64,000 nt of DNA, taken from NCBI GenBank assembly GCA_004431415.1, contig QPMI01000225.1, positions 1 to 64,000 of the forward strand, given 5' to 3'. Position 1 is the first letter of the stretch, and every line of letters starts with the position of its first letter. The stretch is from Cyanophora paradoxa CCMP329 (taxonomy: Eukaryota; Plantae; Glaucophyta). Under the pieces are notes generated by a model. The model was not told the origin of the DNA. It worked only from the letters and a program-made list of their open reading frames with translations, and ran no database searches. Made by a program: the position numbers and the translations under genes. Shown one piece after another: positions 15,531 through 64,000 of the stretch.

Positions 15531-15724
15531 GGGGGGATTGACCCGGAGTCAGGTGGCGTGCTGAACTTTCCCGGAGTCAGGCATGGGGAGCAGTAATAGT
15601 GGTGTAAGATCAAGATATGTGATTTGTGATATATTGAACAAACTGATAATGCATAGCTATATGGCGCGGCGGGCCCCGCGGCCGCCCGATCGCGAAGCCC
15701 TGCGGCCGGCCGCGGGGCGAGCTT

Positions 15725-35509: not shown

Positions 35510-38500
35510 ATGGCCAATTGCAAGTCCCGGCCGCGGGTTCGTGCGCGTGCCGTCGAAGGCGCTGATCGCCCAACGGGCGACAGCTCCGTGTCCGACGCTT
35601 CTGACCGTGAGCCTGCGCCCTGCGCCTGCGTCTGTGCAGCCGTGCTCCTCGTGGCGCTCGCGGCGTGCGCGGCGCTCCTCCCGCGGGGAGCCGCGGCCGG
35701 CGCCGCCGCCGACGAGGACCTCTACTTCCCCGCCCTGAACTGGACTTCCCCGACGACGGCAGCGGAGGCCCAGACGCCGGTCCGCCTCGCCCCATGCGCA
35801 TGCCAGCCCGGCCGCCGCCGGATCCCCGGATCGGAACTGACCTCTGCGCCGGCGCGGATCGGGAACTCGGGCTGTTTAAATTTGACAGGTCATACGATTC
35901 CTCGCTCTCCGCGCACGGGACGCCCTCGCGGCGTGCGAGGCCACGGGCCGCATCGGAAGGTAAGCCCCGGCCCTCCGAGGTTCCGAGGCTCCGCCCCGGG
36001 CGGCGGGCCGACGTGCCACGGTGTACGGCTCCGGATCCGGTCCGGGTCCCCGGGCCGGATCTGCGGTCTGCTAACGCGCGCCGGTGCCCCCCGCGCAGGA
36101 TCGACTGTCCTGCATCCGTTGACCTCGCGCTTAGAAATCCCACGATTACGGTACGCGCCCCCGCCCCTTCCTTTTCCCTTAAATCCCCCCGAGCTCCGCT
36201 CTAGACCTCGCCCAGTCGTGCGCGCTCACGCTCTTTGCCTGCTGGGCGCTCAGATCCCCCTCGTGCCTACCTCCTCCAAGGTGCATACGCGCTCTTTCTG
36301 AGGGGCCCAGAACCAGGCCGGTTGACGGCCGGGGCTAGCTTGAGTTCGTGTCCATGCCAGCTGCTGATCATGAGCCCTCCCTCCTCGGGCCTCGCATGCG
36401 CAGGGCCAGGCTACCGCCGCGGGTTCCTTCCGGGTTCGCGCCTTAAGCTTCTTCACTGAGTCAGCTTCAGGATCTAAGATATATGGGCCATGGCCGCCGG
36501 GCTGGAGTATATATCCTGAACTCTTGGCAAAATCTGCTCGCGATCGTATGTACCCTTGCGAAAATTGACTGCAATTGAACCCCGCAGGTGAAATCGAAGT
36601 ACGCGGTCGGGCTCTCCACCTCTAAGGACCCTGAAAGCGATGCGTTTACAGTACCCATCCTCATCTCCGACGTCGTGCGCTGCTTCCCGGGCGCACCCCC
36701 ACCCACCCCCACTTTCCCCCCACAACCCCCCCCCCCCGTCCCCCCCCCCCCCCACCTCCGAGCCCTCCCTTCCCCATCACTCCTCCTCTCCTGGGCGCCG
36801 TCCTCCCTCGAGCTCCCTCCTTCCGGCCGATGCCCCCGCCCCCCCTCCCCCCCCACCCCCCCCCCTTCCCACTCTCCCCCACCTCCCCCGCACCTCCCAC
36901 CCCCAACCCCACCTCCGGCCCCCCTCCCCGTCCCCCTCCGGCCCCCCGCCCCACCGGGCACCCCCCACTCCTACCCCCTCCCACCCTACCCCCAACCACT
37001 GTCCCCCCCCCCCCCCCCCCCGCCTCTCTCCCTCTTCTCCCGCCCTCCCCGCCCGCGAGCTCCGGCCGTCGATCCCTTCCCTCCGTGCGCGCCCTTCCTA
37101 TGTGTCTTTTGACTCTTCGGCGCGGCAGGGACCCGAGGGGGCGCTGGTGCAGATGGGAGGGCCGAAGGGGGAGGTGGACCCCGCGACCGGGCGCCTCGTG
37201 GGGGGCACGCGCATCACGGTCCGGGGTACGAGCTTCGGGTCGCTCGTCGCCGGCCGGGGGCCCCCGCCGGGGGGCATGGTCCTCACCGTCGTCGGCTCCT
37301 CCTTCGCGCCTCGGCCGGGGCGCGACGACGACTGCGACGGCGCCGACATCGCGTGCACCGCCGCCGGCGCGGACTCGACGGACCCGATCCTCGCAGCCCG
37401 CGGCATCTCCCCAGCCACCGACTTCAACGGTCGCACAACGCGCGGCAGCGGAACGACGGCCGCCGGTGCCCGTGGCATCTTCCCTGCCACCGACTTCAAC
37501 GGCAGGACGACTCGGGGCGGCGGAATGACGGCGGCCCGCGGCATCTTCCCGGCCACCAACTTCAACGGCAGGACGACGCGCGGCGCCGCTGTCATCACGG
37601 TCGTCGGCAGCGCCTTCGCGAAGATCGAGCCGGCGGTGAACTTCAACGGGCGCTCCACGCGGGGCTTCCACGTTCTGACCGTCGCCGGCCCCGCGTTCGT
37701 GGACCTGGAGGAGTCGGACCTGCCCAAGGCCGGCGCCGTCCTCACGGTCACCGGCTCGAGCTTCGCGCCGGGCCGCGACGACGACTGCGACGGGTTCTTC
37801 TGCGCCGTCGACGGGCGCGACAACGACTGCGACGGGGCGGTGGATCCCGAATGCGCAGCGAAGGCCGCGGCCGCCATGTCGGAATCGAAGCTGGTGTGGA
37901 GCCCGCGGAGCAACCGCGAGGTCATTGCCGCGCTCGGCGGCTCCGCATCCGCCGGCGGCGCCCTCTCGCTCACGATCGACGGGGCCGCCTTTGGCAGCGG
38001 CGCTCTCGCCGCGCTGTCCCCGCCGATGTCGAAGGACGCCTCCGGGCCGGGCGGCGTGGCCCTCACGGTTGTCGGGACGCCGTTCGTCGAGGCGCCGGCG
38101 CCGGCCCTCGTCGCCGCCGCCGACGGGACCCTGCTCGCCCTCTTCCCGCTCCCCGACGCCGTCCCCGACCCGTGGGCGGTCCTCGGCCCCGCCGAGGTCT
38201 TCGGGGGCACCCCCGGCCGCCTCGCGATGGGCTGGCCGGGTCGGGAGGAGGGGGCGGCGGCCGCGGCCACGGGGGGCGGCGTGCTGGCCGGGCAGACCCT
38301 CGCCGCCCGCCTCGGGCCCGGCAAGGAGGCCGAGGCGCTCCTGGCGGCCCGCGGCATCTACCCCGCCACCGACTTCAACGGCCGCTCGGCCCGCCTCGCG
38401 TCCGTCTGGCCGCCCGTCGACTACGACTCGGCCCCCTTCTACAACAGCAACGAGGGCGTCCTCTCCTTTGCAACCAGGTCAGCTCCTCCGCGCCCTTCGT

Positions 38501-41500
38501 CGACGTCCTTCCCCGCCCATGCCCGCGGCCGCGCCGGCGCCCTCCTCTCCGCAGGACCGGGAAGCGCGTCGCTCGTGATCGCGCGCGAGCCCAGCGGCCT
38601 CGCGACGTCCGGCGTGCGGGCCTCAGGTGCGCGCACCTCGCCCCGAACCCGCCCCCGCGCTTGTCATCAATGGCGGCCACAGGCGGCGGCTGCAGCAGGC
38701 GAACTCGAACCCGTTCTACCAGAACAATGCGATTGAATTCCAGGTGGATCTGGGCGACATCGACCTTCTCTCCTTGGAGAGCGCGCGAATCGTGCGCGGA
38801 CTTCGATGCGTATTTGTGCTTCTACTCTTATCCGACGAGCTCGAGTCGGCAGGTCGAGAACAATACGCCGCAGCTGTCGGCGAACCTGCTGCCTCCCGAG
38901 CGCATCGACATGTCTGTCCTCGTTCCGGTGCGACGCGATTTTCGAGCCGGCGGCCGAGCCCGGGGGCCTAATCATGACCCGGCACCCGGTGCGGCGCGCG
39001 CGTGTGCGTGCGCATGCGCAGGCGTCGAGCGCGGGCTGCACGGCCGGCGCATGCGAGCAGGAGCGGGCGCTGGAGATTAGCGACGCGAACTTCGAGGAGG
39101 TCGTAGCCGGCCGCGACGCCCCGCGCATCGCCAACGACACAGAGGCGAGCCGGGAGGGCACAGGGCTTTAGCTGAATATATGGCTTGTATATCTTAGCAC
39201 AATTTTCTTCTCATGCAATGTGTAGAGAGCGGCTTCTTTCTCGTGGCTCAATTGTTTGCGCAGGGAGCGCTTCAGACATCGAGCATGTCGCTGAAACTGC
39301 CGCCCGCCGGCACCGCTGGCACTCGCGACCCGCTGACCTTCGACGGCGACCGGCTCATGTTCGCGCGCTTCTCTTACTTCGACGAAGTGAGTGTCAGATC
39401 CCGAATGCCGTATTCTTTTGGTTCGCCGATCTCATGGAAGCTATAAATTAAAGGACGACGCATTTCACCTTCTCTCATCTGTGTACTACAACAACTCGCG
39501 CCCGGCAACCTGTTCGACCATGCTGGTACGCGTCCCCGCCCCCGCATCGCGCCCCGTCCGCCTGGATCGATGTCGACGTCTCCGTTTCACACATAATTGA
39601 TTTTGCTTCCGAGCTGCAGCTGCGGGAGAACACGGTCCTCGAAGCGTGTGTTGCACCGTTTGGCGGCCTCAACTCCGCGGGTGGCTGGGACGCCGATTCC
39701 GTCGTTCGGTACACCACGCAGGTAATTCTATAATTAATACATAGAAACATATACAGTCATGCGCTGCACGTGTTCGCTCGAGATTTGACGATAATCATAA
39801 GCTGATCATCAAGCAACTCGTGAAAGCAGACTCTTGAAGGGGACCCGACGGCGCGGTGCTACCGATACGGAGGATCTGCGGCCTTCGGCTCGTCGGCGAC
39901 GCGGGGCAGCAATCCGACCGCGTTCCCGAGCTTCCGGAAGGGCGCGAGCTCGAGCTCGCGGATGAGCGACATCCAGAGCAACCCGCTGCACGCCGAGGCA
40001 TCGTCGGGCGAGAACCCTCTCTTCGAGGGCGGCGCCACCGTGCGTCTCACAGATCTCGCGAATTCGAAAAGCGGAATTCCAAATGCCTGATATGACAACT
40101 GCGGCGGGGGCGAGCAGCTGCGGAAGCTGCTGCAGGAGGCGGTGAACGGCTCGGACGTCCTGATCAAGTGCCGCGCGCTGGGCAGGAGCGACCGCCTGGT
40201 GCAGCAGTTCTACAAGCCCTGCTGCGCCGACGCCGACGGGGACGGCCTCGGAGACGAGCTCGCCAAGAGCACCGCCTTCCCTTCCGTCTGCCACGCCACG
40301 ATGGTGCGCTTCATCGAAAGACTGCTCGAGCTCGAGGCATAGCCCAGCGAACGCTCTCCGTGACTGTGACTGCGCGCAATTTAAATTTGCGCAGGACTTC
40401 AGCACAGGCGCATCAGTCGAGCGTTGCAGCAGTATGGCGGTGCTTTTTCTAAAAGCTTTCTCCGGGATTTTCATGATCGATCGCGAGCTTATCCAAGGGG
40501 CCGAACACGTCAGAGCAAAGAGAACGGCCTCGTCACGCGTCTCTCCTCTACGGTGCGTGTCGCTTCGACGCCAGCGCTAGCTCTCTGAGTACATCGCCCC
40601 GCGCGCAGGATGAATACGGGCAGACGACGGAGCGGTACACGGGGGCCTCCGCGCCGAGGACGACCCAAGGCGCCACCTTCGGCGAGCGCCTGGTCGCGAC
40701 GGTGAGCGGTCGCGCCTCGTGCAGACCCAAAACATACAAGTTTATTACTTTCGCATGCGAATAAAAATGTTCGATGACTTCGAAAATAATTCGCTCTTCG
40801 AATTCAGAACGGACAGCCTGCTCGCGTTTTGTCCGCCATGGCCGCCGGAGGCGGCAGCATTGGAACGCGCATCCGGCGCCTCAAGCCGGTTATTGGCATA
40901 GATTACATCAAGTTTGTGCGCTCAAAATTTCAATCGATATCTTCATGAGCTATATATCGAAACCTTAACTGGATTGCACTTGCACTTGCACGCAGAATCG
41001 AGTTCAAGTTGGCAGCGAGTCGTCGGCAACGGCTTGTGTCTTTCCTTCGAGCGCGTCAGGCGCGCCGGCTGCTCTGAAATGGGTGCCTGCACTCCGTTTT
41101 GCGCGTTGCGCATTTGTCTCCACATAACTGCGAGCGCATCGCATTTCGATGGCAGGTCGGGCACGCCACCGCAAAGAACTCGATCCGCAACATGAAGTCC
41201 TTGTTGGCGTCCGACGCTTACGTGGACCTGCGTCCCGTATTCTTCTCCGTGTTTCCGGTGAGCACTCCGTTTGGTGGACCGCGTGCATCCGCCCCTGCCG
41301 CTCGCGGCTCGGCTAACAGTCTTGCCCTGCCTCGTGACTAGGAGGGGGGCTCCCAAGGATGCACGCTTCCAGTTCCCTCCGCGACAGTTCAGAAGCTCGG
41401 ATTGATGGCGGTGCGTGCGCGTATCCGGCTCTATATCTAGATCTAGATCTACGCTTTTGAGAATGGCGGATTCTTATTTCGAGCACGCACGGACTCCAGG

Positions 41501-44500
41501 GTACGTTCGAGGACGCTGGCTCCCAGTGCAAGCCCGTCGAGAACGAAGCGTTCGCGTGCCTCCTGCCAACTAGCGTCAGCGAGGCTTCCGGTGTCACGCT
41601 CGTGCGTTCGAAAAACCAATATTCATGCCTTTAATTGCAAAGCTTTTGAGCCGAGGGTCGCCGATCTCAGAGCGAAGTCAAAGTGACGGGCGCGATTGCC
41701 ATAAACATCGTGAGTGACTGTCTCCGACCCTCATTCGTATTAATATTCAAAAACAAAACCTGTTTTATAGCTGCTCAGCTGCGCGTGACTCTTTAACGGG
41801 CATGTGCAGGCGGGGCTGGAGGGTACTGCGTACATTCCCGAGTTTGGGACCCCACGCAACATCTCCGGCTACGTTCGCATCGTGCGCAGCCTTTCGTGGC
41901 TCCCCCATCCCACCCATCCGTGCTCTGGCTGCGAATAGCTTCTCTAATTATGTAATTGGTCACGGAACCAGGACGCTCTGGAGCGCGCGTACCGAGTCCA
42001 CGTCGTGCGCGTCCATCGACTCCTTGTTGCCCCTCTCCGCTCAATTCGCGTCGATGTAGGACGGAATCGACGGCTTCGCGTACCTCGCCCGCCCGGCGCC
42101 GCCGCCCGCCCGCGGCAGCGCCCGCGCTTCGACGTTCTTCTGGAAGACGAGTGCAGGGTACGAGCCACTAAAGACCGTGCGTTTTCCCACACACATCATT
42201 ATTTACGGTTATTCGTAATCGAACCCTTGAACACAAGAGCAGGACCTTGACACGTTCTACGGGATCGCCGCTGCCGACGTCTCGGTCTGTTGCCTTCCAT
42301 AAAACAATATAAACATTCTCAGAACCTTTCTGCGGCCAAACGCTTCGGGACTTGAACAACGCTGAAAATTACGCAAGCAGAGCCTCCCCGCCGACGGAGA
42401 TGAAGGGCTGCTGGTGTTTGCCCGCGCCCGCCTTGGTTCGCCGTATCTTCTCTAATTCCACTCGGTCCGCTCTGCAGAGCGAGGGCGAGTCTATTTACAT
42501 GACCCTTCCTCCTCGCGATAAGGACAAGCCTTTCGCGGTGCGAAGAAGGAATCTTTCGCGGTGCGAAGAAGGAATCTCTCGTACCTCCGTCGGCGGCTGC
42601 CAGGTGCTGTCCGGATCCTGCGCATGCGTACGCGCCCAGTCGCAGTCGCAGTTGATCCGAGCCCTGCGCGCTCGCGCGTGGCAGACGCTGAGCGAGCCGA
42701 CGGAGCTGGGGGGCAAGGTGACCTGGCTGGCCTCCATCAAGAAGTTCGCGGCAGCGCAGAACTCGGTCGATCAGGTCCCTCTCCTCTGCTCCACCGTCTC
42801 GGTGCGCCCCCGCGCCCCCGCAAATTTCAAACGTTCGAAATCCCGCCGCGTGTGATTGCGCGGGCGGCGGGGAAGGATGCCAAAGGCGGGACGGTGGAGG
42901 AGTGCTTCCGGGGCACCGCGTACCTCCACTCGGGCGAGGCGAGTGCCGGGGAGCGCCTCTACGAGGTGGACCCTGCAGGCGCGGGGTCCGCGTGGAGGGC
43001 CGTCGTGGGGAAGGTCAACGTCGACAACAACCCCTCGATCACGTCCCGAGTCACCCAGCGGGTGCGTCGCGTCCCTTGTGGCGAGCATATATATCGACTT
43101 TTTGAAGTCTTCTGCGCGCTTACTTGAATTCGACAGGACGCATCCGGAAACGTCATGAAGCTGTGCTATATCGAGAAGGCGAATCCGGTTGCTTTCCTCC
43201 AATCATGCGTCTTTTTTCTATTCAACAGGACAAACAGAACGGCACGGGAGCCATCGTCAGCGAACTGTGCCGATCACCGCGAGTGCGCACACCTGATCGG
43301 CGCTTCACGCTTTCGAACTTGACCCACTGACCGGTTATTTACAGGAAGCCGACGTCGCCTCCAACCTCGTATTCTACAAGGTCCGCGACCCGTTTTGGAA
43401 ACCGGCGAAAAGTAGTAAATCTCACGACCCATATTGCGACAGGGTCTCACAACGCAGACCAATATCTGGGCCTCCCAATATGAGTGCCACGCAAAATCTG
43501 CTGTGCGCATTGTCTTGCCTTCGGCCTATCTATAGCCATTTTCTTGCCTCTGCTTATGTCTCAGCGCGGCGCCGCCCTTCCATCCAGGCGTCGACGCTTC
43601 CAGGACCCTACAACTATTTCCCAGTGCGATTTATACCGTAAATGTAACCTTGTTCTCGAACGCTTTAATTTAGCGCCATCGTCCCGCTGTCCGCGCAGCG
43701 CGGACCGAAAGCGCCCTCCAAGAGCCATCTCGGTGAGCGATCAGATCTAGCGCGATTTGAAAACGAGCGCGCGGTAGCCATATGCATCTGATAACGAAAT
43801 GCTTTTCTCTGGGCGCAGTGGGGCCCGAGTCGACACTGCCCGTGCACGAGACGTGCTATCGCCTCCTGGTCCGCTGCCGCCGCTCTAGATCTCGATATCT
43901 ACGCTCGGAGTAAAATTCCATCGAGCGCTCGCGCGAGCGCGCTGCTCACGCTCGAGTCCATCCCAGAGCGCGGACGGGCCCGTGGCCGAGCGCGTCACCG
44001 TCGAGGTGAGCCCCACGAATTCAAAAGAGTGACGCCTTCCACATTGACAAAAATACACATTATCCTCATAATCACCTGCTGGGCTCGATTTGCAGTACCC
44101 GCAAACAACGCGACTGGTCAGGCAGACACGGTTAGAGGACTTCATTCCCTGCAAGCTCGCACCAGCTATAGTACTGTGAGGCGGGGCGCAATCATTCTAA
44201 CCTCGGAGCGGGGTCAGGACCTACCGCCGCAGTGGAGCGTACGACTCCAGCAAACAGCTCCTGTTTTCATACGACTGTGCGCCGCCGGGCTGCGCATGCA
44301 TATGCTGCCGCTCAAAATCAAAGCGTCATGATCACATTTAATTCGATTCGCGCAGCGCGTGGAGAGGTCGGCGTGCACGCGTCGACGGCTGCGGCGCTCC
44401 CCAAGTCCGACCCCGCCTACCAGAGCAAGGAGTCAGACCTCGTGCGCCCTTCACCATAAGTATACTCTTCAAAATGCAATTTATATCTGGACGGGCGCCC

Positions 44501-47500
44501 GCGGCCGCGGCCGATCGTCGTCATTATTGTCTTATATTACGCACGTGCACTGCGCAGCACTTTCTGCGGCGGCTCATCAACGTGCCACGGGAGCCTCAGT
44601 CGGGCCTTCCGACAGGCAAGCGGCTGCATGCCACAGACGACGGGTCCGGGGGGACCAGTGCCGGCGCCGGCACTGTCGCCGCCGGGGTTCGCATATATAT
44701 ACCCCGCCCCTCGTGCTTTAAAACTTCGAGTCGCCATGGGGAGTTCGGTGACGGCCGCCGTTGGCGTTGCAGGAGACGACGGCGGGCACGAAATCGGTGC
44801 AAGACGGGGGCGCCGGAGCCGATCGCGAGGCGGGCAAGGCGGAGGTGGCGCCGGCGGGGGCGGCCGTCTTCGACAAAGGGACGCCGCCGGCCCCGCTCGA
44901 GCCCGGCTCGAGCCTTTCCAACGGCGCCGTCGTCTTCAGTCCCCCGCGAGAGCTCTACGAGCCATTGGTCAGCTTCTCGACTCCTGAAACCTCTCAGCCC
45001 CGCTAGTGGTTTTTGTTCATGGAAGCTGACACTTGAGGTCGCGCAGCTCGAGGCTGCTTCCGATATGCTCCAACTCCGGGGGCGGTTGATCCCTTCCACT
45101 TCTTGGGAGGTGCGCCTGCTGCAAATATTTTCAAAATTCCTCCGGCTTTAATTTTGCACTTGTGATGAAAATTTAAACGGTGACGTTGCAGCAAGACTAC
45201 TCATCCTCGGACAGGACGGTCGATCCGGTGCGGATTTATAGGACACGCCGCGGCCGTGCACGTGGCTGCATGTGCACGGTTTTGCACCTCATCCATACCG
45301 CGAACGCAGCTCGGGTCGGACATCCGCACGTGCCCGCTGAACCCCGACCCGAAGTGCGCCTACGAGATCGCCGTGTCGCCCTCCGCGCCCGGCGACGCCC
45401 CTCCCATGGCCTCCAGCGACGCGGTAATTGTAATCGATACCATTCACGCGTCTCCCGTCTTGGGCCCGCGCCCTTCCGGGTCGCGCCCTAGGCCTCGCCT
45501 GACTTGCCGACTTTTCACTTTTCACTTCAAACAATGTGCAGGCGTGCCGCCTCTGCCGGCGGCCGGTCCCCTTGGTGCTTCGCCACGAGGACGCCCTCCG
45601 CACGTGCCCTGACCCACGTGCGCCAGTGCTTCAAATTCGCACACCGTGAATTTAATTTCCTCTTACGAGGATGCCAACCGCAGCGGCTATCGCCTTCCGC
45701 CCCGCGCGACCGCGCGTTGAGGACTGTGCGCCGTCGCTTTCATGAACACGTCAAATAATCCGTTTCGACGTGTAAGCGCCGGCGGCGGGCAGGCATCCCG
45801 ACGGCGGTGGAGCCCTCGACGGGCGTTGCGTACACGAGCCTCGTGCCCGAGGCGAACAAGCCGATGCCGCTCGTCCTCAAGGCCTCCAAGGGGACCCGGA
45901 GCGCCGGCGCCGGCGCCTTCCGCGGCCACCTCCGCGTCTCCACCTTCGTCGCCGGCCTCAGCGAAGACCTCTTCCCGTTCCTGGTCCGCTCGGAAGTCGC
46001 AATCCGCGGAACGAATGCGCTGCGGTTGACGCGGATCGCGTCTGCAGCCCGACGTGGAGCTCGAGTCGGCCAAGCTCGTGGGCGTCGGCCCCAAGGCCCA
46101 GCGTAAGCGCGCCGGCTGCGCTCGCTCAGACACGCGCCTTCCGACTCTAGACCTGACGCCGACGTCGCGGCGCGGGATTCGAAGTGGCGACGAAGCTCGG
46201 GCCTCAGCTGCGGGTCGTCCAGGGGCCGCCTCCGCCCGGCCTCAACGAGACCGCGATCAGGCACTTGCGCTCTAATTTATGTATAGTTTTAGATCTGCTG
46301 CGCATGCGCACCCGATGTCTTTCTGAGCTGCAGCTGCCCCCGCCTGCCCGCAGCGCCGAGCACCCTCTGGGGACGGTCTTCGTCTCGCGTGAGCCGTGGG
46401 ACCCGCGGGCTCTCTCCTACAACTGGACGGAGGGCTGCGCCGCCCGCTGCCGCGGCTGCGCCGACGCGCTCCACCTCACCGTCGTCCTCAACCAGTGACC
46501 ATCGTTTCTGCAAATCCCGCAGAACCCGCAGGTCACCCTCCTGATGCGAGTGCAACGCAGGACCCTGGCGGACGAGGCGGTGCCCGTGCGAGCGGTTTCA
46601 GCGCGCGTGGCGCGGACAGTCATCCGGCCGCCCGCCCGCAACGTCCGCTTTGTCTTCCGGGCGCGGGACGCGTGCGGCCCCGCCCTGGCAGAGGCCCGCG
46701 CCAAGTCCGGCGGCAAGGTCGGGGCGCTGCCGGCGGCGTGCCGGCCCTCCCGGCGCCTCGAGCTCGCGGGGGACCCCCTGAAGGCGCCCCGCGTCGTGGG
46801 CGTCGCACGTGTGGCCGACCCCTCGAGGCGCCTGGCCGACGCCCTCGGGGATGGCGAGCCGCTGCCCTGGCCCGCCCGCCTGGACGCGAGCCTCACGCCG
46901 GCGAAGGCGGCTTCAGCGGTCAAGCCCGCTCCGCAGGAGTCCACGGTGAAGGCCGCCGAGCGCGCGAGCCGGCGTCGACTGCGCGCCGAGGCGGCCGGCG
47001 GCCTTGTCTGGGGCTACATCGCAGTGGCTGACATGGATGGCGACGGCGCGCTCGACTTCGGCGCGTGTGCCTCGCCCCCCGACCCCCCGCTGGCCGCCGG
47101 CGCCCCGCGCGCCGCGCCCGTGCCCCACGCACCCTGGCCCTCGCCCTCGCCCTCGCCCTCGCCCTCGCCCTCGCCGACCGCATCCCCAAGCATAGCCCCG
47201 TCTCCCACAGCGACCCCTCGCCCCCGCGTGCGTGCCGCGGGCGCGCCACTATAGCGACAAACTCATGATCACAGCCGCTCAATATTTAATGTCGTACACG
47301 TGTATGTTCTGACTTCGACTTCGGGGGCCGTCCCGGCCGGCGCCAGATCGCGAAGCTCAAGATCGGGAAGGGCGACGGCGGGTCCCTTGTCTTCGACGAG
47401 AACGGCGTCGCCCGCCTCTCCGTCCCTGCCGCCCGCGCCTACCAGGTGCGCCTGCCCTTGGCTTCTCTCGGCCCCCCGAGCGCGAGGCTTTCCCGCGTTT

Positions 47501-48395
47501 TATCTGAATGTCCGGAGCAGCCCGGCGGTGAAGTCAGCATTTTCGGGGAGGTAAGCTACAATTCTCGAATGTCATCCGAGGTGTTGAGCACTGGGTACCT
47601 GACTTTGACTCAGGGCTTCCCATACCCCGAGCCGATCGAGGTGTACCTCGTTTCGGGCGGACAGAGCCTGCAAGCGCCTGAAGCGCGGTTCGTGTCGGAG
47701 ACGGAGATGCGTTTCCGTGCGCCCGTTTCAAATTCCTGGATGATAATCATAATATTCAATTCTTCATGTGCCATGACATTTCAAGCATTATTATATTCTG
47801 CAATTGAAATTGAAATTTCTTCAGGTGTTCCAAAGCCGCCAGGGCGCCGCGCGCGCAAGCTGCTGGGCCCGGTTCGTATGTGTGAATATATCTCGTTATA
47901 TCTAGAAGAGTCGGATTCGAAATTGAAATAAGAGCATTCATGATCATCGATTGCAACTGATTTGATGATGATCTGCAGGCCTTCTCGGCGGGGACGGTGA
48001 GCGACCTCCGGGTCGTCAGCGTGAACGGCGCCTTCGAGACCTTCACGCTCGAGAACGCGCGCCCTCTTGCTCCCCTCCCCCCCCCCCCCTCCCCCCTCCC
48101 CCCTCCCCCCCCCCTGCATGCGCAGCTGCCTGGCGCTCGATCGGATCACTTACCTTGCACTTGCGCCTCGCAGGCGTTCGCCTGGGATGAGCCGCCCTTT
48201 TCCGGACCTCTGTAAGTGATTCCGCACCCTAAGAACATAACGAACCTTCACTTATTCCCATGCGTCAACGTGAACGTTTGCAGGCCCGTTCTGGCGTCTG
48301 GAGCAGTGAGGGGGCGGCCGGTCAAGACGTCGACAATCTGGTCTATCCTCATTTTATGCCAACTGTCCTTAATCAAATATATTAGCTTCGGGTAG
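35510..48395 (+). CDS. Very large secreted/cell-surface protein with signal peptide, mosaic short motifs, SP-repeat stalk, C-terminal TIG-like domain and hydrophobic tail
   Basis: Signal MANCKSRPRVP/VLLVALAACAALLPRGAAA. Dozens of mostly phase-0 exons. RRLQQ/RKLLQ/RKLL motifs typical of algal secreted proteins. PSPSPSPSPSPT near 47140. Exon GFPYPEPIEVYLV..ARFVSETEMRFR. Ends STIWSILILCQLSLIKYISFG* (TAG 48393-48395). The full exon chain was not verified at every junction. Confidence 0.7.
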
Positions 48396-48680: not shown

Positions 48681-48930
48681 CCCTTGCAAATTGCTCCCCT
48701 TACCTGTACGCGGTTGGGCTCTCCACCTCTAAGGAACCTGAAAGCGATGCGTTTACAGTGCCCATCCTCATCTCCGACATCGTGCGTTGCTTCCCCGGGC
48801 GCCCCCTCCTCCTCCCCCCCTCTCCCCCTCCCCTCCCCCCCTGCGCCACCTCCGAGCCCTCCCTTCCCCATCACTCCCTCCTCTCCTGGGCGCCGTCCTC
48901 CCTCGAGCTCCCTCCTTCCGGCGATGCCCC
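48681..48930 (+). pseudogene. Diverged partial duplicate of an exon plus intron start of the upstream gene (copy of ~36553-36840)
   Basis: TACGCGGTTGGGCTCTCCACCTCTAAGGAACCTGAAAGCGATGCGTTTACAGTGCCCATCCTCATCTCCGAC matches 36600-36670 with few substitutions. The intronic CACCTCCGAGCCCTCCCTTCCCCATCACTCC..CTCGAGCTCCCTCCTTCCGGC is also shared. The acceptor is lost. Confidence 0.85.
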
Positions 48931-49376
48931 CGTCCCCCCCCCCCCCCCCCCCCCCCCCCTGTCGTCTCCCGGCCCACTTCTAAGACAGCTCTTCACTTCT
49001 TGCGGCACCAATTGATGGACCGGACCTTCTAATTGTGAATAATTTAATGCATTCTTAATCGTTAGCGATTGCATTCGGGATGCACTTATTATAATTATGT
49101 TTAGAGGAGGTGAGCGGGGCCGCAGTCGACGTCGGCGGATTCGAAGGCTGCCGGGCCGCCTCCGAAGGACGGCGAGCCGACGGGGGCAGGGAGGCCCTCC
49201 GCGGCCGCCCCGGGGCGCCCCCTCGGCCGCCCCCTCGAGCTCGGCGGGGGCGGCGGCTGCGGCCTCGAGCTCGTCCACGCCGCACGAGTAAGGGGAGACG
49301 AGTTCAGCCTGCGGGGCGCGAGGGAAAGCAGGGCGGTGTGAGGCTCCAAAAGAAAGAGCTGTAGAAGCGAGCTCGG

Positions 49377-50572: not shown

Positions 50573-51679
50573 CGCGGGCGCAGGGCGCGGGAGGAGTGGG
50601 AGCTGAGCGCGGGGAAGGGGCGGCGGGCGCTGCGGGCCGGCCTCGCCGCCCTCGCCGGGGCCCCCGCCCTCGAGGAGGCCCTCGCCGCCGCCCGCGCCGC
50701 CCTCGCTGGCGCCTCGTCCACCGCCGCCTCTTAGCTATAGCCCCTGGCCATGGGCCCGGCCGGCGCCCCGTCCGGGGGTGCCGGGCCGGCCGCGGGCCGG
50801 GCCGAACCGGCCCGTCTATTGGGGGCCTTGGGTATAGGTGTGCGTAGCTACTAGGCTAGGGCGGTCCTCAGAACGCGAGGTCGCCGAACTTCGGAAGCAG
50901 CCTCAGAAGCGAGGCGCCCTCGCGCGCGCTGTCTTGATCATGAGCGCTAGCCGCTAGCGCTCTCGACGTCGCATCTCAGAGTCTAGATCGCGTAGTAGCT
51001 CGGCGAAGTACCACGCATGCGCGCGGTCGCGGGTCGCGCCGCGAGCGCGCGCTGCAGCATGCATGCATGCATGATCAGCGCGCGCGCGGCGCCGGCTGCA
51101 GCTATAGCTAGCTTTCGGCGCTGCGGGCCGGGGATGAGCGCGCGCGCGCTGCAGCTGTCCATGCCAGTGGCATAGCTCATGAACTGAGGACTCGACACAG
51201 CTAGAGGAGATCTGGCTATAGAGCTGCTAGCGCTAGCTATAGAGCTCATGATCAGCGGATGCTTGAGCTCGAGCGCTAGCTCTCGTTTTGGCGAAGATCG
51301 ATATGCGCAGGCTGCAGCGCGCTAGTACGCCTCCGCAGCGCGCCTCCGGAGGCGCGCCTCCGGAGGCGCGCCTCCACCACGTCGACGTCGGCCACCCGGA
51401 CCCGCGCGGATTTGAAGCGCTGCAGACGCAGATCTAAAGCTAGATTCTACTAGGCTAGATCTAGACTCGATGAAAAGGAGAACGAAGGGACCTCGCGCGG
51501 ATTCGAAGCGGGGCGCAAGACGGGGAAAAGTGGAGTCGGGGGGTATCGATCCCCCTACCTCGTGCATGCTAAGCACACGCTCTACCATGTGAGCTACGAC
51601 CCCGTTGAGAGATGAGCCGGACCGCATCGCCCGGCGCCCTCGCGACCTTCCTGTGAAGCTCAGGCTGCTGGCTCACCGT
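50571..51679 (+). repeat. Direct repeat copy 1 (~1.1 kb): 3' end of VIT-vWA gene + spacer + tRNA-Ala
   Basis: Essentially identical to 55425-56532 (offset 4853; one extra G near 50612). Identical ORFs appear at 50983/55836 and 51322/56175. Confidence 0.95.
51531..51603 (-). tRNA. tRNA-Ala (anticodon AGC)
   Basis: GGGGTCG TA GCTC ACATGGTA GAGC G TGTGC TTAGCAT GCACG AGGTA GGGGG ATCGATA CCCCC CGACTCC A folds as a cloverleaf. It has the G3:U70 Ala identity pair, the eukaryotic Ala A54 T-loop, and a following CTTTT Pol III terminator. Confidence 0.97.
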
Positions 51680-53172: not shown

Positions 53173-55587
53173 GCCCGCCCTTGCTGACTTCGCGGGCCGC
53201 AGGCTTCGGCAGCCGGTTCGTGCGGCTCTTCGAGGAGAGCCGCGACTACGGCGACGCCAGCGCCGCCGCCGCCGCCGCCCACGTCTCTCAGGTCTGCCCA
53301 CGGCTCGAAGTCCGGCCAGGGCACCGCCGGGCTCACTGACGCGAGCCGCGGCTCAGATCCAGGCGGACCTCGGCGGCACGGAGCTGCTCCTGCCCCTGGA
53401 GGTGCAGCGCCGGCACCCGCCCCGCCCGCCCGCCCGCCCGCCCGCTGCGCAGAGTCGAGCTTGCTCGCGCAGGCGGTCTTTGCGGGGCCGCCGGACCCGC
53501 TCTTCCCGCGCCAGGTCTTCATCCTGACCGACGGCGAGGTCCGCCCGGGCCAGCCTCCCGCCCCACGCGCCGACTGAGCTCAGCTGGGCCCAGGTGAGCA
53601 ACACGGAGCAGGTGATCCGGCTGGTGCGGCGGCACGCGGCCGAGGCGCGCGTCTTCAGCGTGGGGATCGGCTCCGGCGCCAGCGAGCACCTCGTGCGGGG
53701 CGTGGCCCGGGCCGGCGGGGGCCAGGCCGAGTTCATCGGCGACGGCGAGCGCGTCGAGGGCGCCGTCCTGCGGCAGCTGCGGCGCGCCGCGCAGCCCTCG
53801 CTGGCCGCCCCGCCCTCGACTGGGGCAGCCCGCCGCCCAGCAGGCCCCGCACGCCCTCCGCCCCTGCTTCCAGGTACGCATGCCCGCGTGCAGGCGCGCT
53901 GCAGCGCGCCGCCAACGTCGAGGCGGGCCGGGCCGCAGGGGACCGGCTCGTCGTGTACGCTCTGTTGCCGGCGGGGGCCGCGCCGCCGGCAGCGGTGGAG
54001 CTGCGGGCGCAGCGCCGGCGGGGCCCGTCGCGCTGTCGGTGCCCGTGCCGGCGGCGCGGGAGGCGGGGCCCGTGTGGCGGCTGGCGGGGCGGGCGGCGGT
54101 GCGGGACCTGCAGGAGGGCAGCAGCGCGCTGCACGGGCGCGACGGGCGCTGCTGGCCGGCCGCACGGAGGCCGAGGTCGCGGCCGGCGTGCTCGGGGTGG
54201 CGCTGCGGCACGGCCTGGCCTCCTCCCGCACCGCCTTCGTCGCCGTCGAGGAGCGCCCGGGGGCCGCCCCCGCCTCCGAGCCCATGCGCCTCGCCCTCGT
54301 GCCCGCTCTCCTTCCCCGCGTCCGCCCCGCCCCCGGCCCACCGGCCGCGCCGGCCCGCCCGCGCTCTGCCCCCCGCTCAACTCGCCCGCGCAGGACGAGG
54401 CACCGGAGCGCTTCGCCGTCGGGCATCCGATGCCGATCTGCCGTCGCTCCGCGGCCCGCCCCCCGGACCATCTGCTCGCATCTGCGGCGCACAACCGGCG
54501 CGCCGCGCGCTGCAAGCTCGCCCTCTCCTCCGCGAGCTTCGCCGTCGCCGACCGCAGCGCCGGGGGCCTCATCGGGGCCCGGAAGCGCGCGGTGGGCGTG
54601 GCGGAGGCGGCCGCCCAGGGCGAGCGCCCGGGCCTCTTCGAGGAGGCCGGCTTCGACGGCATCCCCGACGGCGTCGAGGTGGACGCCGGCGCGGAGGGCG
54701 CGTGGCGGCCGCCACCCGCCCGCCGGGCGCGGGCGCGGGGCCGGGGCGGGCGCGGGTCCGGCGGAGCGACGCGGGTGCCTTCCGCTTCGAGGGCGACTCC
54801 GCGGATTCGGACCGGGAGGCCCGCCCGCCCGCCCGCCCTCTTTGGAGCCCTTGGGGTCGAGCCTCACACGCCGCCCCGCAGGTCGAGGCGGAGCAGCAGC
54901 GGCGGCAGGCCTCCTCGCCCGCGGCGGCCGCCGGCTTCGGCGCCCTGGCCGGGGCCGCCACCTTCTGCAAAGCCTCCCTCCTCGATGGCCCCGACGCCAA
55001 CGCCGGCGATGCCGCCGCCTCTTCTCTTCCCTCTGCGCTTCACCTGCAGCTCTGGGGCGCCGGGGGGGAGCGGCCCCACGACTCCGTCCTCCTCCTGCAG
55101 GTCCCCAATCCCCCTGATCCGTTTTGATCTGATCTTATCTGATCCGATCTCAGGGCGCCACGGGCCCGTGGGAGCTCAACGAGGCCCTCGCCGGCGCCCT
55201 CGGCCGGCCCCTCGCCGCCCTCGCCGCAGCCACGCCGTGCGCCCCGCAGCCGCCGGCAGCCGCGACCCTCGCCCCGCCTAAGTTTCCCGCGCAGGGCGGG
55301 GCTGGCGGGGCCCCGGAACTGTGGGCGACGGCGCTCGCCCTCGCCTTCCTCGAGGCCCGCTGCCGCGCGTGCGCCCCGGCCTCGCTTCGACGGAGGCTGC
55401 TGGCCCCCTCGAGGTCGCTGACGGGGCGCGGGCGCAGGGCGCGGGAGGAGTGGGAGCTGAGCGCGGGAAGGGGCGGCGGGCGCTGCGGGCCGGCCTCGCC
55501 GCCCTCGCCGGGGCCCCCGCCCTCGAGGAGGCCCTCGCCGCCGCCCGCGCCGCCCTCGCTGGCGCCTCGTCCACCGCCGCCTCTTAG
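51847..55587 (+). CDS. VIT + von Willebrand factor A domain protein (VWA5A-like), multi-exon
   Basis: VIT domain: VPLKAVAVTGRVD/GFFCQVTVEQTYENDGAAPIEAVYRFPLPEGAAVSGFEVEVAGRRVVGAVREKEAA..YLLEE..IFTASVGNLPPG. vWA domain: EYLFLVDRSGSM (MIDAS), ADLGGTE, VFILTDGE, RVFSVGIGSGASEHLVRGVARAGGG. The start is approximate. Confidence 0.92.
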
Positions 55588-56532
55588 CTATAGCCCCTGG
55601 CCATGGGCCCGGCCGGCGCCCCGTCCGGGGGTGCCGGGCCGGCCGCGGGCCGGGCCGAACCGGCCCGTCTATTGGGGGCCTTGGGTATAGGTGTGCGTAG
55701 CTACTAGGCTAGGGCGGTCCTCAGAACGCGAGGTCGCCGAACTTCGGAAGCAGCCTCAGAAGCGAGGCGCCCTCGCGCGCGCTGTCTTGATCATGAGCGC
55801 TAGCCGCTAGCGCTCTCGACGTCGCATCTCAGAGTCTAGATCGCGTAGTAGCTCGGCGAAGTACCACGCATGCGCGCGGTCGCGGGTCGCGCCGCGAGCG
55901 CGCGCTGCAGCATGCATGCATGCATGATCAGCGCGCGCGCGGCGCCGGCTGCAGCTATAGCTAGCTTTCGGCGCTGCGGGCCGGGGATGAGCGCGCGCGC
56001 GCTGCAGCTGTCCATGCCAGTGGCATAGCTCATGAACTGAGGACTCGACACAGCTAGAGGAGATCTGGCTATAGAGCTGCTAGCGCTAGCTATAGAGCTC
56101 ATGATCAGCGGATGCTTGAGCTCGAGCGCTAGCTCTCGTTTTGGCGAAGATCGATATGCGCAGGCTGCAGCGCGCTAGTACGCCTCCGCAGCGCGCCTCC
56201 GGAGGCGCGCCTCCGGAGGCGCGCCTCCACCACGTCGACGTCGGCCACCCGGACCCGCGCGGATTTGAAGCGCTGCAGACGCAGATCTAAAGCTAGATTC
56301 TACTAGGCTAGATCTAGACTCGATGAAAAGGAGAACGAAGGGACCTCGCGCGGATTCGAAGCGGGGCGCAAGACGGGGAAAAGTGGAGTCGGGGGGTATC
56401 GATCCCCCTACCTCGTGCATGCTAAGCACACGCTCTACCATGTGAGCTACGACCCCGTTGAGAGATGAGCCGGACCGCATCGCCCGGCGCCCTCGCGACC
56501 TTCCTGTGAAGCTCAGGCTGCTGGCTCACCGT
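55425..56532 (+). repeat. Direct repeat copy 2 (~1.1 kb)
   Basis: Matches 50571-51679; diverged similarity continues for ~55 bp more (51680-51733 vs 56533-56590). Confidence 0.95.
56384..56456 (-). tRNA. tRNA-Ala (anticodon AGC), identical second copy
   Basis: Same 73-nt sequence as 51531-51603. Confidence 0.97.
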
Positions 56533-59368: not shown

Positions 59369-59850
59369 GGTGGCGGGCGTTGAAAGCTAGCTCGCGGCCA
59401 GAGTTGCCAAATCGGGGCCAGAGACGGCTGGGTCCGGCCGGAAGGCCGGCAGAGGCTTCTCTAACTTAGCTAGGCTCCCGGCTACTGCAGGATTCGCTGG
59501 CTAGTGGGTGTCTCGTTGCCTTGCTTGCTGCGTTTATCGTGTACCCGGGTGGCAGGTGCACGGTGCACCGTGCACCGTGGTGGGCCCGGCTGGCACGCAC
59601 GGCGGCCTCTCGCTGCGACCGAGAAGAGCTCCGTCAGACTTCGAGATCGCAAGTTGTGCGGAGACTTGACTTGACCGGTTGGCCTCCCGCTTTAGATCTT
59701 CGACCTCCTGCCGTGCGGGAGCGCGGTTGTGCTGCATGATGCTGACACGCCGATCTCTGCCGGCGTAGGTGATCGGACCAGAGCTCCGTACGTCGAGCAG
59801 GAGCGGTTGCGTTCGGAGGTCGAGCGCTGCGTACGTGAGGTGTTGCCGCG

Positions 59851-62800
59851 ATGGCTGCAGCTGCAGCTGTGGCTGCGGCGCGAGAGCGGAGTGAGGGACC
59901 GGAGTCTCCATGCAAGGCCATCGTCGACGAGGATCCGAGCCTCGCGCCTTGGCTCTCCAAGATTGAGGGCAGGTGCGGCAGTGCTCCCCCGGCCGCGGAC
60001 GAGAGCCTCGCGCGGGGCGATCGAATTCGAATTCGAATCCGACACGGCGGCGACGCGGCGGCGCAGGATGCTGCGGTATTTGCAGCGCATGAAGCAGATT
60101 GAGGAGTACGAGGGTGGCCTCCTCCGCTTCGCAGAGTCGTGGCGCCGATACGGCCTACACCGCGAGGGCAACGGCCTCTTCTACCGGTCCGCGTGCATTC
60201 GGAACATGTGTACATGCGCCCGCTTTCGTTTGCACCGACCTCGCGCGCGCGCGCGCGCGCGCGCAGGGAGTGGGCGCCGGGCGCGAAGGAGATGTATTTG
60301 TTCGGCGAGTTCACGGGCGGGGACAAGCGCAAGTACCCCTGCGAGCGCAACGAGTTCGGCACCTTCACGTGCTTCATCCCCGACCCCGTACCCGGCCGCA
60401 GCGCCGTCCCCCACGGGTCCATCGTCAAGGCGCGCGCGCCGGCGCCCGCCCCTCCGCACCTTATATAATTACCCCAACTTCTTGCGCAGACGCTGATGGT
60501 TCTTTGGGACGGGAAGCCGATTGAGCGTGTACCCGCCTGGATCCGCCGCGCCGTTCAGCCCCCGGGGAGGATCGCCTACGAGGGCGCGCTGTACCCCCAT
60601 CCCTTCCCCCTCCCCCCAATCGTGTGCTCTTTCCGCTGACCGGGGGAGCGATCGATCAGGGGTACACTGGGATCCGCCGGAGCGGTACGCTTTCCGCCAC
60701 GAGCGGCCGCCGCGGCCGGCCTCGCTTCGCATCTACGAGTGCCACCGTGAGCCAGCCTCTGAGCCCCGACTCCGAATTGCTGATTGCTCCTCGCGCAGCG
60801 GGGATGGCGCTGGAAGAGCCGCGCGTGGGTACGTGGCGCGAGTTCGCCGACACCGTCCTCCCGCGCGTCTCCCGCCTCGGGTTCGAATCCCCCCCGGCCT
60901 CGATCCGCAGCCGGTCTCATTCTTGAAATTCTGATTTTGGTTTCTACGTATATACGCATTGCGACCGATACCCCCGCAGCTACAACGCGATCCAGCTGAT
61001 GGCCGTGCGGGGATCCGAGCCACTCAGCTGAGCTCTCCTGTACCCCGACTTACCCGGAGCCGTTACCCCGCAGATCCAGGAGCACGCGTACTACGCCTCC
61101 TTCGGGTACCACGTCACCCAGTTCTTCGCCCCCTCCTCCCGCTTCGGTGCCGCCCCGTAGCCCTCGCTCCCCCTCGCCCACCCCTGACGCGATCTCTAGG
61201 TACCCCGGACGACCTGCGGTACCTGGTGGATTCGGCCCACGCAAGGGGGATACTCGTCCTCATGGACATCGTCCACGCGCACGCGAGGCGAGGGATTCAT
61301 CCCCGGGGGGCCTGCTACCGAATCCGCTCCCCGCTAACTCTTCGCTGTACCCCCCCGCAGCTCCAACATTGAGGACGGGCTGAGCCACTTCGACGGGACG
61401 GACGGGCACTATTTCACGCCTGGGCCGGCAGGTACCCATCCCGACTGGAAATCGTGCGCTAGCCCCCCCCCCCCCCCGCTCTTCCTTTCCTCCTCGCGCC
61501 TTTTCACGTACCCCGCTCTCAGGCGGCTCTTTGACTACGCGAACTGGGAGACGCAGCGATTCCTCCTCTCCAACCTCCGCTACTACCTCGAGGAGTTCAA
61601 CCTGTGCGTATCCCCGAGCCACCTTCCCCCTCCCCCCCCCCCCTCTGACCCTCTCTTCAGGGATGGATTCCGCTTCGACGGTGGGCGGTCTTCCGCCCCC
61701 CCCTCCCCTCCCCCCTCCCCCCCCCCCCCTCGCCCCCCACCTCCCTCTCAACGTGGGTACCCGCGCGCAGGCGTGACGTCCATGCTGTACAAGCACCACG
61801 GCTGCAACTTCCCCGGCTTCAGCGGTTCGTTCTCGTTCTTTTTCTATTTTGTCGTACCCCCGACACGTGTATCCGCCCGCAGGGAACTATGCGGAGTACT
61901 TCGGGGACTGGGTAGACGACGCTGCCGTGACGTACCTGACCCTGGTGCCCTCCCTCCCCCCCCTCCCCCCCCCCCCCCCCCCCCCCCCGCGCTCGCTCCA
62001 ACCTCGCGCGGTACCCTCCCGAGCTCACCCCCCCCTCCCCCCCAGGCGAACGAGCTGGTGCACGCGCTGTACCCCGGGGCGATCACGGTGGCGGAGGACG
62101 TGTCGGGGATGCCGACGCTCTGCCGCCCCGTCCGCTGCGGCGGCCTCGGCTTCGACTACCGCCTCGGCGAGCCCGCAAGCTCGAGCTCGCCCGCGAACGC
62201 CTGAGCCCCGAGCCCCTCATCTGAGCCCGGGCGCAGGGATGGGGATCCCGGACAAGGTGTTCGGCCTGGTCAAGGCCGTCAGGGTGCCCGGCCACCCCTC
62301 GCAGAGAGCTCTAGGAGTGGGGCCCTCTTCGCCAGCGCTGGCGCGAATCATGACGCCGGCCTGCGTGCGCAGGACGAGCACTGGGACATGGGGGACCTGT
62401 GCGGCGCGCTGGGGAACCGGCGCCGCTGGGAGCCCACCATCGCCTACCTCGAGTGCCACGACCAGGCGCGCCCCCGCCTACCCAGCCCCTTCTAGCCTGA
62501 GTTGCCCTTGTTTTTCGCTTCCGGCTCGTTCTCACGGGATCGCGGCTGCCAGGCGATGGTGGGCGACGTCACGCTCTCCTGGCGGCTCATGGGCGACCAG
62601 CTGCACAAGCGCGTGCCCCTCCCTAGCACCTCACGGCCCCTCTTCTCACAGCGGGGTACAGGTCCTTCACGGTGGGGCAGGAGCCGCCCGTGGGGGTCGA
62701 GCGGGGGATGTGCCTCCACAAGCTCTGCAGGCGCGTACCCCCTTCCCCCCTCCCCAGCCCCCTCCCCCCTCCCCCTTCCTCCCCCTTCCCTTCCCTTTTT

Positions 62801-64000
62801 TTCTTAGCCGCGGCAGGCTTGTCTGCCTGGCCTTGGGGGGAGAGGCGTGGCTGACCTTCATGGGGAACGAATTCGGGCACCCCGTTCGCGTCCCCCCCTC
62901 CCTCCCCTGCCCTTTCTTTCTGACGTACCCCCGGCAGGAGTGGATCGACTTCCCGCGCGCGGGCAACGGAGACAGCTTCGAGCGCGCGCGGCGCCGCTGG
63001 AGCCTCGCCCGCGATCCGAACCTGCGCTACCGCTTCCTAGAGGACTTCGACGTCGTGCGCCGTACCCCTTTCCTCTCCCCGGGTAGTGAGCGCTGAACGG
63101 CGTACCCTCCTTCCGAATCGAAGGCCATGATGCGCCTCGAGGACGAGTACCGTTTCATGGACGCCCCGAAGCGCGTCGTTCTCGCGGACAACTGTGCGCC
63201 GCACCCCTTTTGAGTTCGTGTACCCCCCGAAGTCGATCCGCCCCGCCCCCGCAGCGGACAAGGTTATCGTCGTGGCCGTCAATCCCCCCCCGGAGGCCCT
63301 GCAAGGCTGGATCGTCGGGCGGCCGGTACACGTACCCCCACACGAGCTGCAGGGGCCCGCTTCAGCTGATCGGTACCCGTCGCCCTTTTACAGCCGGAGC
63401 GGGCGGTGGAGGGCGGGCCCGACCCCCCTGCGCGCCTCCTGCTCGTCTTCAATTTCCACCCCGTGCGGGCCCACTTCGACCTCCGCGTCGGCGTACCCTG
63501 GGCCGGCCGGTGCCCCTTTCTTTAACGCTCCAATTGCGTACCGCGTCCGCGCGCCGAACGCCGTACCCCCCAGGTACCGCGTGGTGCTGGATACGGACGC
63601 CCCCGAGTTCGGCACCGCCCAGCGCCGGTTCGGCCCCAGATTCGCTCGCTTTCGATTGTTTTAATTCGGATTCGAACCAGGCACGTGGAGCGGCATCTGG
63701 ACGCGGTGAAGGCGGCAGCCCGGCGGGAGCAGGGGGTACAGAGCTTCCCGGAACCCTGCCATGTACACGCTTTCAAGTTTCCTCCTACTTCCCCACTCTC
63801 CTTCGAATTCGAGCTAAAAAGCGCCCATCAGGGCCTGCCGCACTGCGTGAAGATCGACCTGCAAAGCCGCTCGGCCGCGGTGCTGCGCTGCGAGCCCGAG
63901 GGGCCTCCGCCGGCCGCCGCCCACGCCGCGCCGCGCCACCGTACCCGCGAGCGCGACCACCGTACCCCCACCTCCGCCGAGCGCGCCGCGCGGGCCGCTG
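59851..64000 (+). CDS. SBE: 1,4-alpha-glucan branching enzyme (GH13_8, starch/glycogen branching enzyme), runs off the window end
   Basis: REWAPGA; RVPAWIR; LRIYECH; [39 protein letters not shown]; DIVHAHAS; DGFRFDGVTSMLY (nucleophile Asp); AEDVSGMP (acid/base Glu); YLECHDQ; [16 protein letters not shown]. About 25 introns. Confidence 0.97.

Follow-up and report, generated by a model that had tools for sequence, protein, structure and literature searches.

The integrated decoys of plant NLRs are whole host domains carried on a signalling receptor, and the short linear motif (SLiM) mimics of pathogens usually comprise 3-10 convergent residues. Alpha-2-macroglobulin, a large secreted protein, displays an array of recognisable peptides in its exposed bait region. 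In NLR integrated decoys and SLiM mimicry alike, foreign or target-like sequence set in a scaffold engages a protein of the opponent (10.1101/2021.08.23.457316). Here we describe a gene at 35510-48395 (+) of a 64,000-nucleotide window from the glaucophyte alga Cyanophora paradoxa CCMP329 (contig QPMI01000225.1, positions 1 to 64,000). Unlike decoys or SLiMs, it carries many near-exact copies of 8-26 residues, hereafter called words, from many foreign families and shared across kingdoms, with no signalling domain. As in NLR integrated decoys, there has been gain and loss between paralogues; the algal protein would, like alpha-2-macroglobulin, expose an array of peptides, but its words are copies of identifiable foreign proteins. 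The best explanation appears to be that the gene represents, in a eukaryote, a broader class of 'peptide-quoting' secreted proteins. A role as a surface library of decoys or mimics, directed against the peptide-recognising machinery of bacterial predators, is plausible, and we favour it tentatively.

The surrounding window DNA is eukaryotic, GC-rich and dense in introns. The gene was modelled as 62 exons and 2,411 codons with no internal stops and a GC content at third codon positions (GC3) of 0.85; 58 intron borders are GT-AG and three are GC-AG, and 49 of the 61 modelled introns are in phase 0. This model is a parse guided by codons and homology, with its ends placed by hand and with some small exons and splice sites uncertain; family searches were run exon by exon, and the joined model was compared only with sequences already collected. 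A preliminary description, made from the DNA letters, had listed 16 motifs within a single signal-peptide protein. All 16 motif starts translate as claimed, in the frame of this one stop-free model, and the model opens with a signal-peptide-like segment in exons 1-2 (35510-35720), with a basic n-region and a hydrophobic core (hydropathy peak at residues 8-10). All parts of the gene described here lie on the forward strand. Towards the other end we read a Ser-Pro/Thr-Pro stalk (47120-47227) from the sequence; the last exon (48284-48395) encodes small residues, a spacer and a hydrophobic tail with no cytoplasmic part, resembling the signal for a glycosylphosphatidylinositol (GPI) anchor. Hydrophobicity of the tail is clear for the paralogue but only moderate for the window gene, and with the signal peptide it makes up a GPI-type pattern; the product is probably a secreted protein with a GPI anchor.

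Searched against 1.84 billion representative sequences, the exon sequence at 37132-38478 had a single match (55% identity), the 2,263-residue C. paradoxa protein tig00000788_g4069 of EukProt (P0001). This paralogue is collinear with the entire locus, with 49% identity to the model across 1,963 residues and 33 cysteines in common; the large exon 8 (37129-38613), richest in words, is 51-55% identical to its N-terminal 460 residues. A genomic run agreed with 37060-42900 at about 31x without differences, except for an assembly collapse at 42555-42589 (217 nt in the genomic contig against 35 nt in the window), which probably hides a small exon. Contamination or assembly artefact was excluded by the introns, by this depth without differences and by the paralogue in the species proteome. 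Directly downstream of the gene, at 48706-48954, exon 7 and the first part of its intron (36599-36860) recur as a stray copy, about 88% identical.

Eight words, starting at 37318, 37810, 37888, 40229, 40660, 41162, 44576 and 47018, exceeded 100 of 100 shuffled controls in a per-word test against 199 bacterial proteins gathered through those words of the paralogue that resemble a needle protein of type III secretion systems (T3SS). Two others, at 38699 (1/100) and 39971 (3/100), were borderline. Across the model, 42 nine-residue windows were found in at least five bacterial proteins, as compared with 0-1 for locally shuffled models. Chance as the source of the eight words was excluded by the shuffle controls.

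The preliminary description had reported sub-domain snippets of several unrelated families, and only partial Pfam and PDB matches were indeed obtained; no whole-domain hidden Markov model (HMM) matched the exons or the paralogue in Pfam, NCBIfam or PHROGs. As had been claimed, signature segments are shared with IPT/TIG, MopE-like (PF11617), FG-GAP/VCBS and Hcp (PF05638) proteins, each matched as a fragment; the matches in the algal protein span just one-quarter to one-third of each such model, and about one-eighth of an Hcp chain. Seven tandem IPT/TIG (PF01833) first-strand words (37201-38085; Pfam TIG positions 6-27 of 84) keep their order in the paralogue. The complete Ig-like domain of about 84 residues is absent, the cut-off being passed only through the repeated first strands; AlphaFold, run on exon 8 with two sequences, returned a predicted local distance difference test (pLDDT) score of 28, so an Ig-like fold of these strands was neither seen nor excluded. 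The three MopE half-motif words (copy 1 at 37318-37341; copies 2-3 at 37771-37845) correspond to PF11617 positions 18-29 of 30, the whole 30-residue motif with both Cys halves being absent (9.8 bits against a cut-off of 27). Copy 1 occurs in 27 bacterial proteins of five scaffold groups (0/100 shuffles), and the same half was found in a bacterial protein at locus L012 of our set. At 44576-44629 lies a loop word of Hcp, the tube protein of the type VI secretion system (T6SS), that matched only Hcp chains (0/100 shuffles). In the PDB, the 22-residue peptide at 44570-44635 matched Hcp chains alone, over 18-20 residues (best E 0.003); there is no Hcp/TssD protomer of about 160 residues, and Pfam and NCBIfam gave no match for this exon. 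An FG-GAP/VCBS loop word (47018-47059; FG-GAP_3 positions 42-59 of 61; 0/100 shuffles) represents one partial repeat, under the cut-off, and no propeller. The thioredoxin N-terminus reported at 39067-39105 was recovered only as a weak N-terminal match to the thioredoxin fold of protein disulphide isomerase (E 1.2); Pfam gave no match, and no thioredoxin fold with CxxC was found. Needle and rod subunits of the T3SS are quoted by their termini, never by their helical core, at a locus that is eukaryotic and intron-rich; no RHS match appeared in the paralogue or the tested exons that would indicate an RHS/YD toxin, and no MG or thioester match that would indicate an alpha-2-macroglobulin-type trap. 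The window protein would appear to lie outside every family that its words resemble.

Other words were recognised by recurrence in bacterial proteins. A WSPRSN word (37888-37914; 28 proteins, 0/100 shuffles), also present in Chitinophagaceae and RHS proteins, had neither an identified parent nor a PDB match, and a DxDGDG calcium-loop-type word (40229-40258) was found in 17 proteins (0/100 shuffles). The two borderline words are an NPFY/NPYF-type word (38699-38728), not present in the paralogue, and a double NPxY/F word (39971-40030), frequent in Chitinophagaceae. Three listed motifs, at 39345-39386, 42918 and 43008, drew no support from family, PDB or bacterial-set searches, the first having neither a parent nor a bacterial match. 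A repeat word, missed earlier, was noticed in 4-5 copies at 37402-37650 and again at 38353-38391 (5-6 copies in all; one in the paralogue). A parent for it was looked for and not found; the sole lead is a nine-residue match, possibly by chance, between window position 37414 and L086 1-6069, a giant virion-RNA-polymerase-like open reading frame of >2,000 residues.

The clearest parents were found in a myxobacterial T3SS operon. Two Myxococcota proteins of 182-183 residues (loci L011 and L060) contain the words at 40660-40689 and 41162-41197 as their own N- and C-terminal regions (0/100 shuffles for each); the C-terminal word recurs in 171 bacterial proteins of 16 groups. Their operon encodes a TPR chaperone (LcrH-like), a rod/needle-family (SctI) protein, SctJ, SctL, SctN, SctO, an SctP-like protein and SctQ; at L087 10001-12765 and L011 3959-6736 it includes two small needle/rod-family proteins. 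The paralogue has a third such word, corresponding to the C-terminal end of this operon's rod-like protein. Quotation is confined to two of the 16 genes at this locus, the needle-like and the rod-like one, and draws only on the N-terminal ~90 and C-terminal ~20 residues of the needle and the last ~17 of the rod. As a further lead, the Atlas links a word-bearing Flavobacterium protein to a Myxococcota cluster with needle-family members (score 0.83). The T3SS* of Myxococcus xanthus (mxan_2434-2464 type) is linked to predation and active at the site of prey contact (PMC10433427; PMC12075869), and has been described as needleless (PMC10433427, PMC12075869). Its gene content matches that of the parent locus, two of whose small proteins supply words; unlike the T3SS* cluster, the algal protein lacks a secretion apparatus and has only the 10-20-residue ends of two subunits. 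The parent locus does encode a protein with a weak needle-family C-terminus, whereas T3SS* is called needleless, and the 182-residue Myxococcota protein may be a needle-like subunit, extended by a long N-terminal stretch, that has escaped notice.

Comparison with the paralogue revealed word gain and loss on a fixed scaffold, the kind of change that the preliminary description had proposed to look for: at fixed positions, words were gained, lost or shortened. Found only in the paralogue were the rod word, a second-type Hcp word and extra needle words; its MopE halves also outnumber those of the window gene by several. The 37402 repeat word is present in more copies in the window gene, which alone carries the NPFY word at 38699. 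In the stretch that holds the thioredoxin-like word of the window gene, the paralogue has an RRM RNP-1 word, a 17-residue stretch that matched RRM proteins only (49 PDB sequences; Pfam RRM positions 27-42 of 70). At 40660 the needle word is shorter than its counterpart in the paralogue, where 19 residues match the Archangium parent; given that identity, convergent point mutation seems improbable. The gene had been called a patchwork of isolated fragments. The short segments hold; much of the protein, however, is a conserved Cys-rich scaffold, so it is no pure patchwork.

Recurrence of this vocabulary in unrelated bacterial hypothetical proteins, suggested in the preliminary description, was confirmed. 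A 151-residue piece of the paralogue matched 695 small bacterial proteins, many 70-95% identical over 14-19% of the query, and a GTDB scan returned 302 loci in Bacteroidota, Gammaproteobacteria, Myxococcota, Verrucomicrobiota, Lentisphaerales and Alphaproteobacteria. With their words masked, these carriers form about 15 scaffold groups in at least five bacterial phyla. The 199 proteins were gathered by needle words alone, yet the window's other words were present too. Carriers include Flavobacterium proteins of ~255 residues, Lysobacterales proteins of ~250 residues, Chitinophagaceae proteins of ~1,100 residues that hold carboxypeptidase-regulatory-like modules, and true RHS/YD proteins; those inspected were secreted, outer-membrane or RHS proteins. 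Words sit in their loops and termini, with tandem repetition, and many carriers terminate exactly at the needle C-terminus. In RHS carriers, the C-terminal cargo place is taken by a string of words; at L021, L036, L045 and L078 (Verrucomicrobiota, Lentisphaerales and one probably misbinned contig), the cargo consists of needle, cold-shock protein (Csp) and EF-Tu words instead of a toxin domain. Fragments of the cold-shock domain (positions 2-24 of 66), EF-Tu domain 3 (11-35 of 106), RRM (27-45 of 70), Tyr kinase (120-137 and 155-180 of 258) and the core of the extracellular contractile injection system (eCIS; 62-77 of 79) were also found in carriers. A second, different word-bearing gene often lies directly downstream of a carrier (L020, L042, L062 4435-5050; L001 10936-11166).

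Algal and bacterial proteins are alike in vocabulary and in secreted or surface location, but their scaffolds are unrelated, the algal one being intron-rich, Cys-rich and probably GPI-anchored. The masked Cyanophora scaffold resembled no bacterial carrier scaffold (best E 0.41), and transfer of an entire bacterial carrier was rejected, no homologous scaffold having turned up. For the carriers themselves, no NCBIfam family model or published description was found, and for the core of a bacterial carrier, none of the PDB matches exceeded Z 4.5. When the structure of the Flavobacterium-type family was predicted, the scaffold piece was confident and the words were not, a weak pointer to linear display, as invariant columns give no contact signal. 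The carriers that were viewed stand alone among housekeeping genes, with no conserved neighbouring enzyme or partner, and no modifying enzyme was seen next door. Viruses and plasmids were considered as vectors; IMG/VR, INPHARED and PLSDB contained no confirmed carriers. No capture machinery was found.

In bacteria, it is the peptides and not the DNA that have been kept, by purifying selection. Across phyla the needle word retains a mean of 18 of 20 residues of its Archangium parent (about 90% invariant), while its synonymous sites are saturated (third-position identity 0.20 in low-GC hosts) and its GC3 tracks the GC content of the host (r 0.94). In the Flavobacterium-type family, conservation was 0.93 in word columns as compared with 0.72 in scaffold columns. 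Of the options offered earlier, purifying selection on the peptides favours that of a selected library.

How the words might work as surface decoys can be reconstructed as follows. The gene would encode a cell-surface display protein, with a disulphide-rich scaffold, a Ser-Pro stalk, a probable GPI anchor and bacterial peptides in its loops. The words would have reached the alga as DNA, through a bacterial carrier gene or as short segments, and would since have been duplicated, swapped and lost. They may then act as decoys or mimics for partners that recognise the same peptides in the attacker, chiefly Myxococcota predators: needle- and rod-like ends and the Hcp loop could jam, cap or misdirect contact-killing machines (T3SS*, T6SS/eCIS), and surface words of myxobacterial type, together with words from cytoplasmic proteins (RRM, thioredoxin, Csp, EF-Tu), could cause the cell to be read as kin or as already lysed. 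Predator decoys are favoured because the best-traced words are the ends of two small contact-site T3SS subunits and an Hcp loop. A broader proposal, which we hold a little more loosely, is that secretion subunits of predators, along with conserved bacterial proteins, have supplied 8-26-residue words to a pool shared horizontally and across kingdoms. Prey ranging from Flavobacterium to a glaucophyte would use short-segment capture to graft such words onto surface, secreted or RHS scaffolds that are unrelated to one another, and would so jam or deceive their bacterial predators.

Several points weigh against a role as predator decoys. The role is inferred from sequence, with no receptor or partner identified, and the equation of the parent operon with M. 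xanthus T3SS* as its orthologue is based on gene content. The bacterial set was gathered through needle words, so myxobacterial parents are over-represented. The Csp, EF-Tu, thioredoxin, Tyr-kinase, TIG and FG-GAP words are not weapon parts, several coming from housekeeping proteins. A Myxococcales genome itself has a carrier (L016 3581-5143), lipoprotein-like and with needle and rod words. In three culture RNA runs there were no transcript contigs of the window gene, whose shorter needle words could reflect decay, and no paper on myxobacteria preying on Cyanophora was found.

NAIP proteins have the C-termini of rod and needle as ligands, and in plants csp22 acts as a microbe-associated molecular pattern. 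The words include needle and rod C-termini, the Csp RNP-1 region and EF-Tu, and it is conceivable, if rather unlikely, that they are agonists, that is, ligands of danger or immune sensors in a bacterial predator or competitor, or in a protist or animal grazer, that trigger avoidance or suicide in a molecular form of Batesian mimicry. Such ligands would suit the placement of words at the toxin position of RHS carriers and the exact end of many carriers at the needle C-terminus; no sensor was identified, however, and the words follow no generic T3SS consensus but particular myxobacterial alleles, those of L011 and L060. Should the words instead be sites on abundant targets and cofactors, they might soak up or prematurely trigger secreted proteases, kinases and toxins, much as the bait region of alpha-2-macroglobulin does. 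The words do include pieces of EF-Tu, thioredoxin, Csp, RRM and kinase loops, which are universal toxin targets or cofactors, and in a bacterial carrier the words were predicted as linear, low-confidence segments on a small folded core. We regard this as improbable, as no trap domain was found and the selective quoting of needle and rod subunits is left unexplained.

The vocabulary could also be functional in bacteria and the window gene a silent or decaying remnant of an old transfer. The lack of RNA contigs in the three runs, the words shorter than those of the paralogue and the stray partial duplicate next to the gene all point that way; 2,411 codons without a stop, canonical splice sites, a GC3 of 0.85, the 33 aligned cysteines and the presence of some words only in the window gene point the other way, and we consider a relic improbable to the same degree as bait. 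Less probable still are motifs for adhesion, amyloid-like co-assembly or modification among the carriers, with no antagonist. Tandem repetition in carriers and the richness of many words in Ser, Thr and Asn would fit such motifs, but near-identity to foreign proteins would go unexplained, and no enzyme or partner was conserved beside the carriers examined. The least credible source of the pattern is a combination of chance matches with ordinary, degenerate domains (TIG, MopE and FG-GAP repeats). The uninformative prediction for exon 8 (pLDDT 28) allows a fold from seven strands, and three listed motifs were unsupported; against this stand the shuffle controls, the near-exact matches of 17-19 residues to RRM and needle proteins with unmatched flanks, and the lack of any full-domain HMM match. 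For the Hcp, RRM, needle and rod words, ordinary domains are largely refuted.

Elsewhere in the window, an exact 300-nt duplication (50612-50911 and 55465-55764) flanks a VIT/VWA-type gene; its 4,853-nt spacing equals that of two tRNA-Ala(AGC) genes (51530-51603 and 56383-56456). Tandem repeat arrays were observed at 10668-11484 (period ~139 nt) and 15672-16773 (period ~150 nt), and an intron-rich gene at 59700-63100 resembles a starch-branching enzyme, as judged from its translation only.

No description of this phenomenon was found in the literature, the papers covered being mostly open-access and no search having been made by peptide sequence. Open questions on myxobacteria (PMC10433427) include how they distinguish kin and prey and which task T3SS* performs at the site of contact. 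A near-invariant set of peptides in unrelated prey, taken from only the two small secreted subunits of the operon, points at the surfaces that matter, and the words are ready reagents for testing the T3SS* questions. If the proposed pool is real, the vocabulary would be a list of the epitopes read by the machines and sensors of predators. Whatever the function, proteins that exchange segments smaller than a domain among phyla, and with a eukaryote as recipient, evolve at a level below that of the domain, which would account for spurious partial Pfam matches in many 'hypothetical proteins'.

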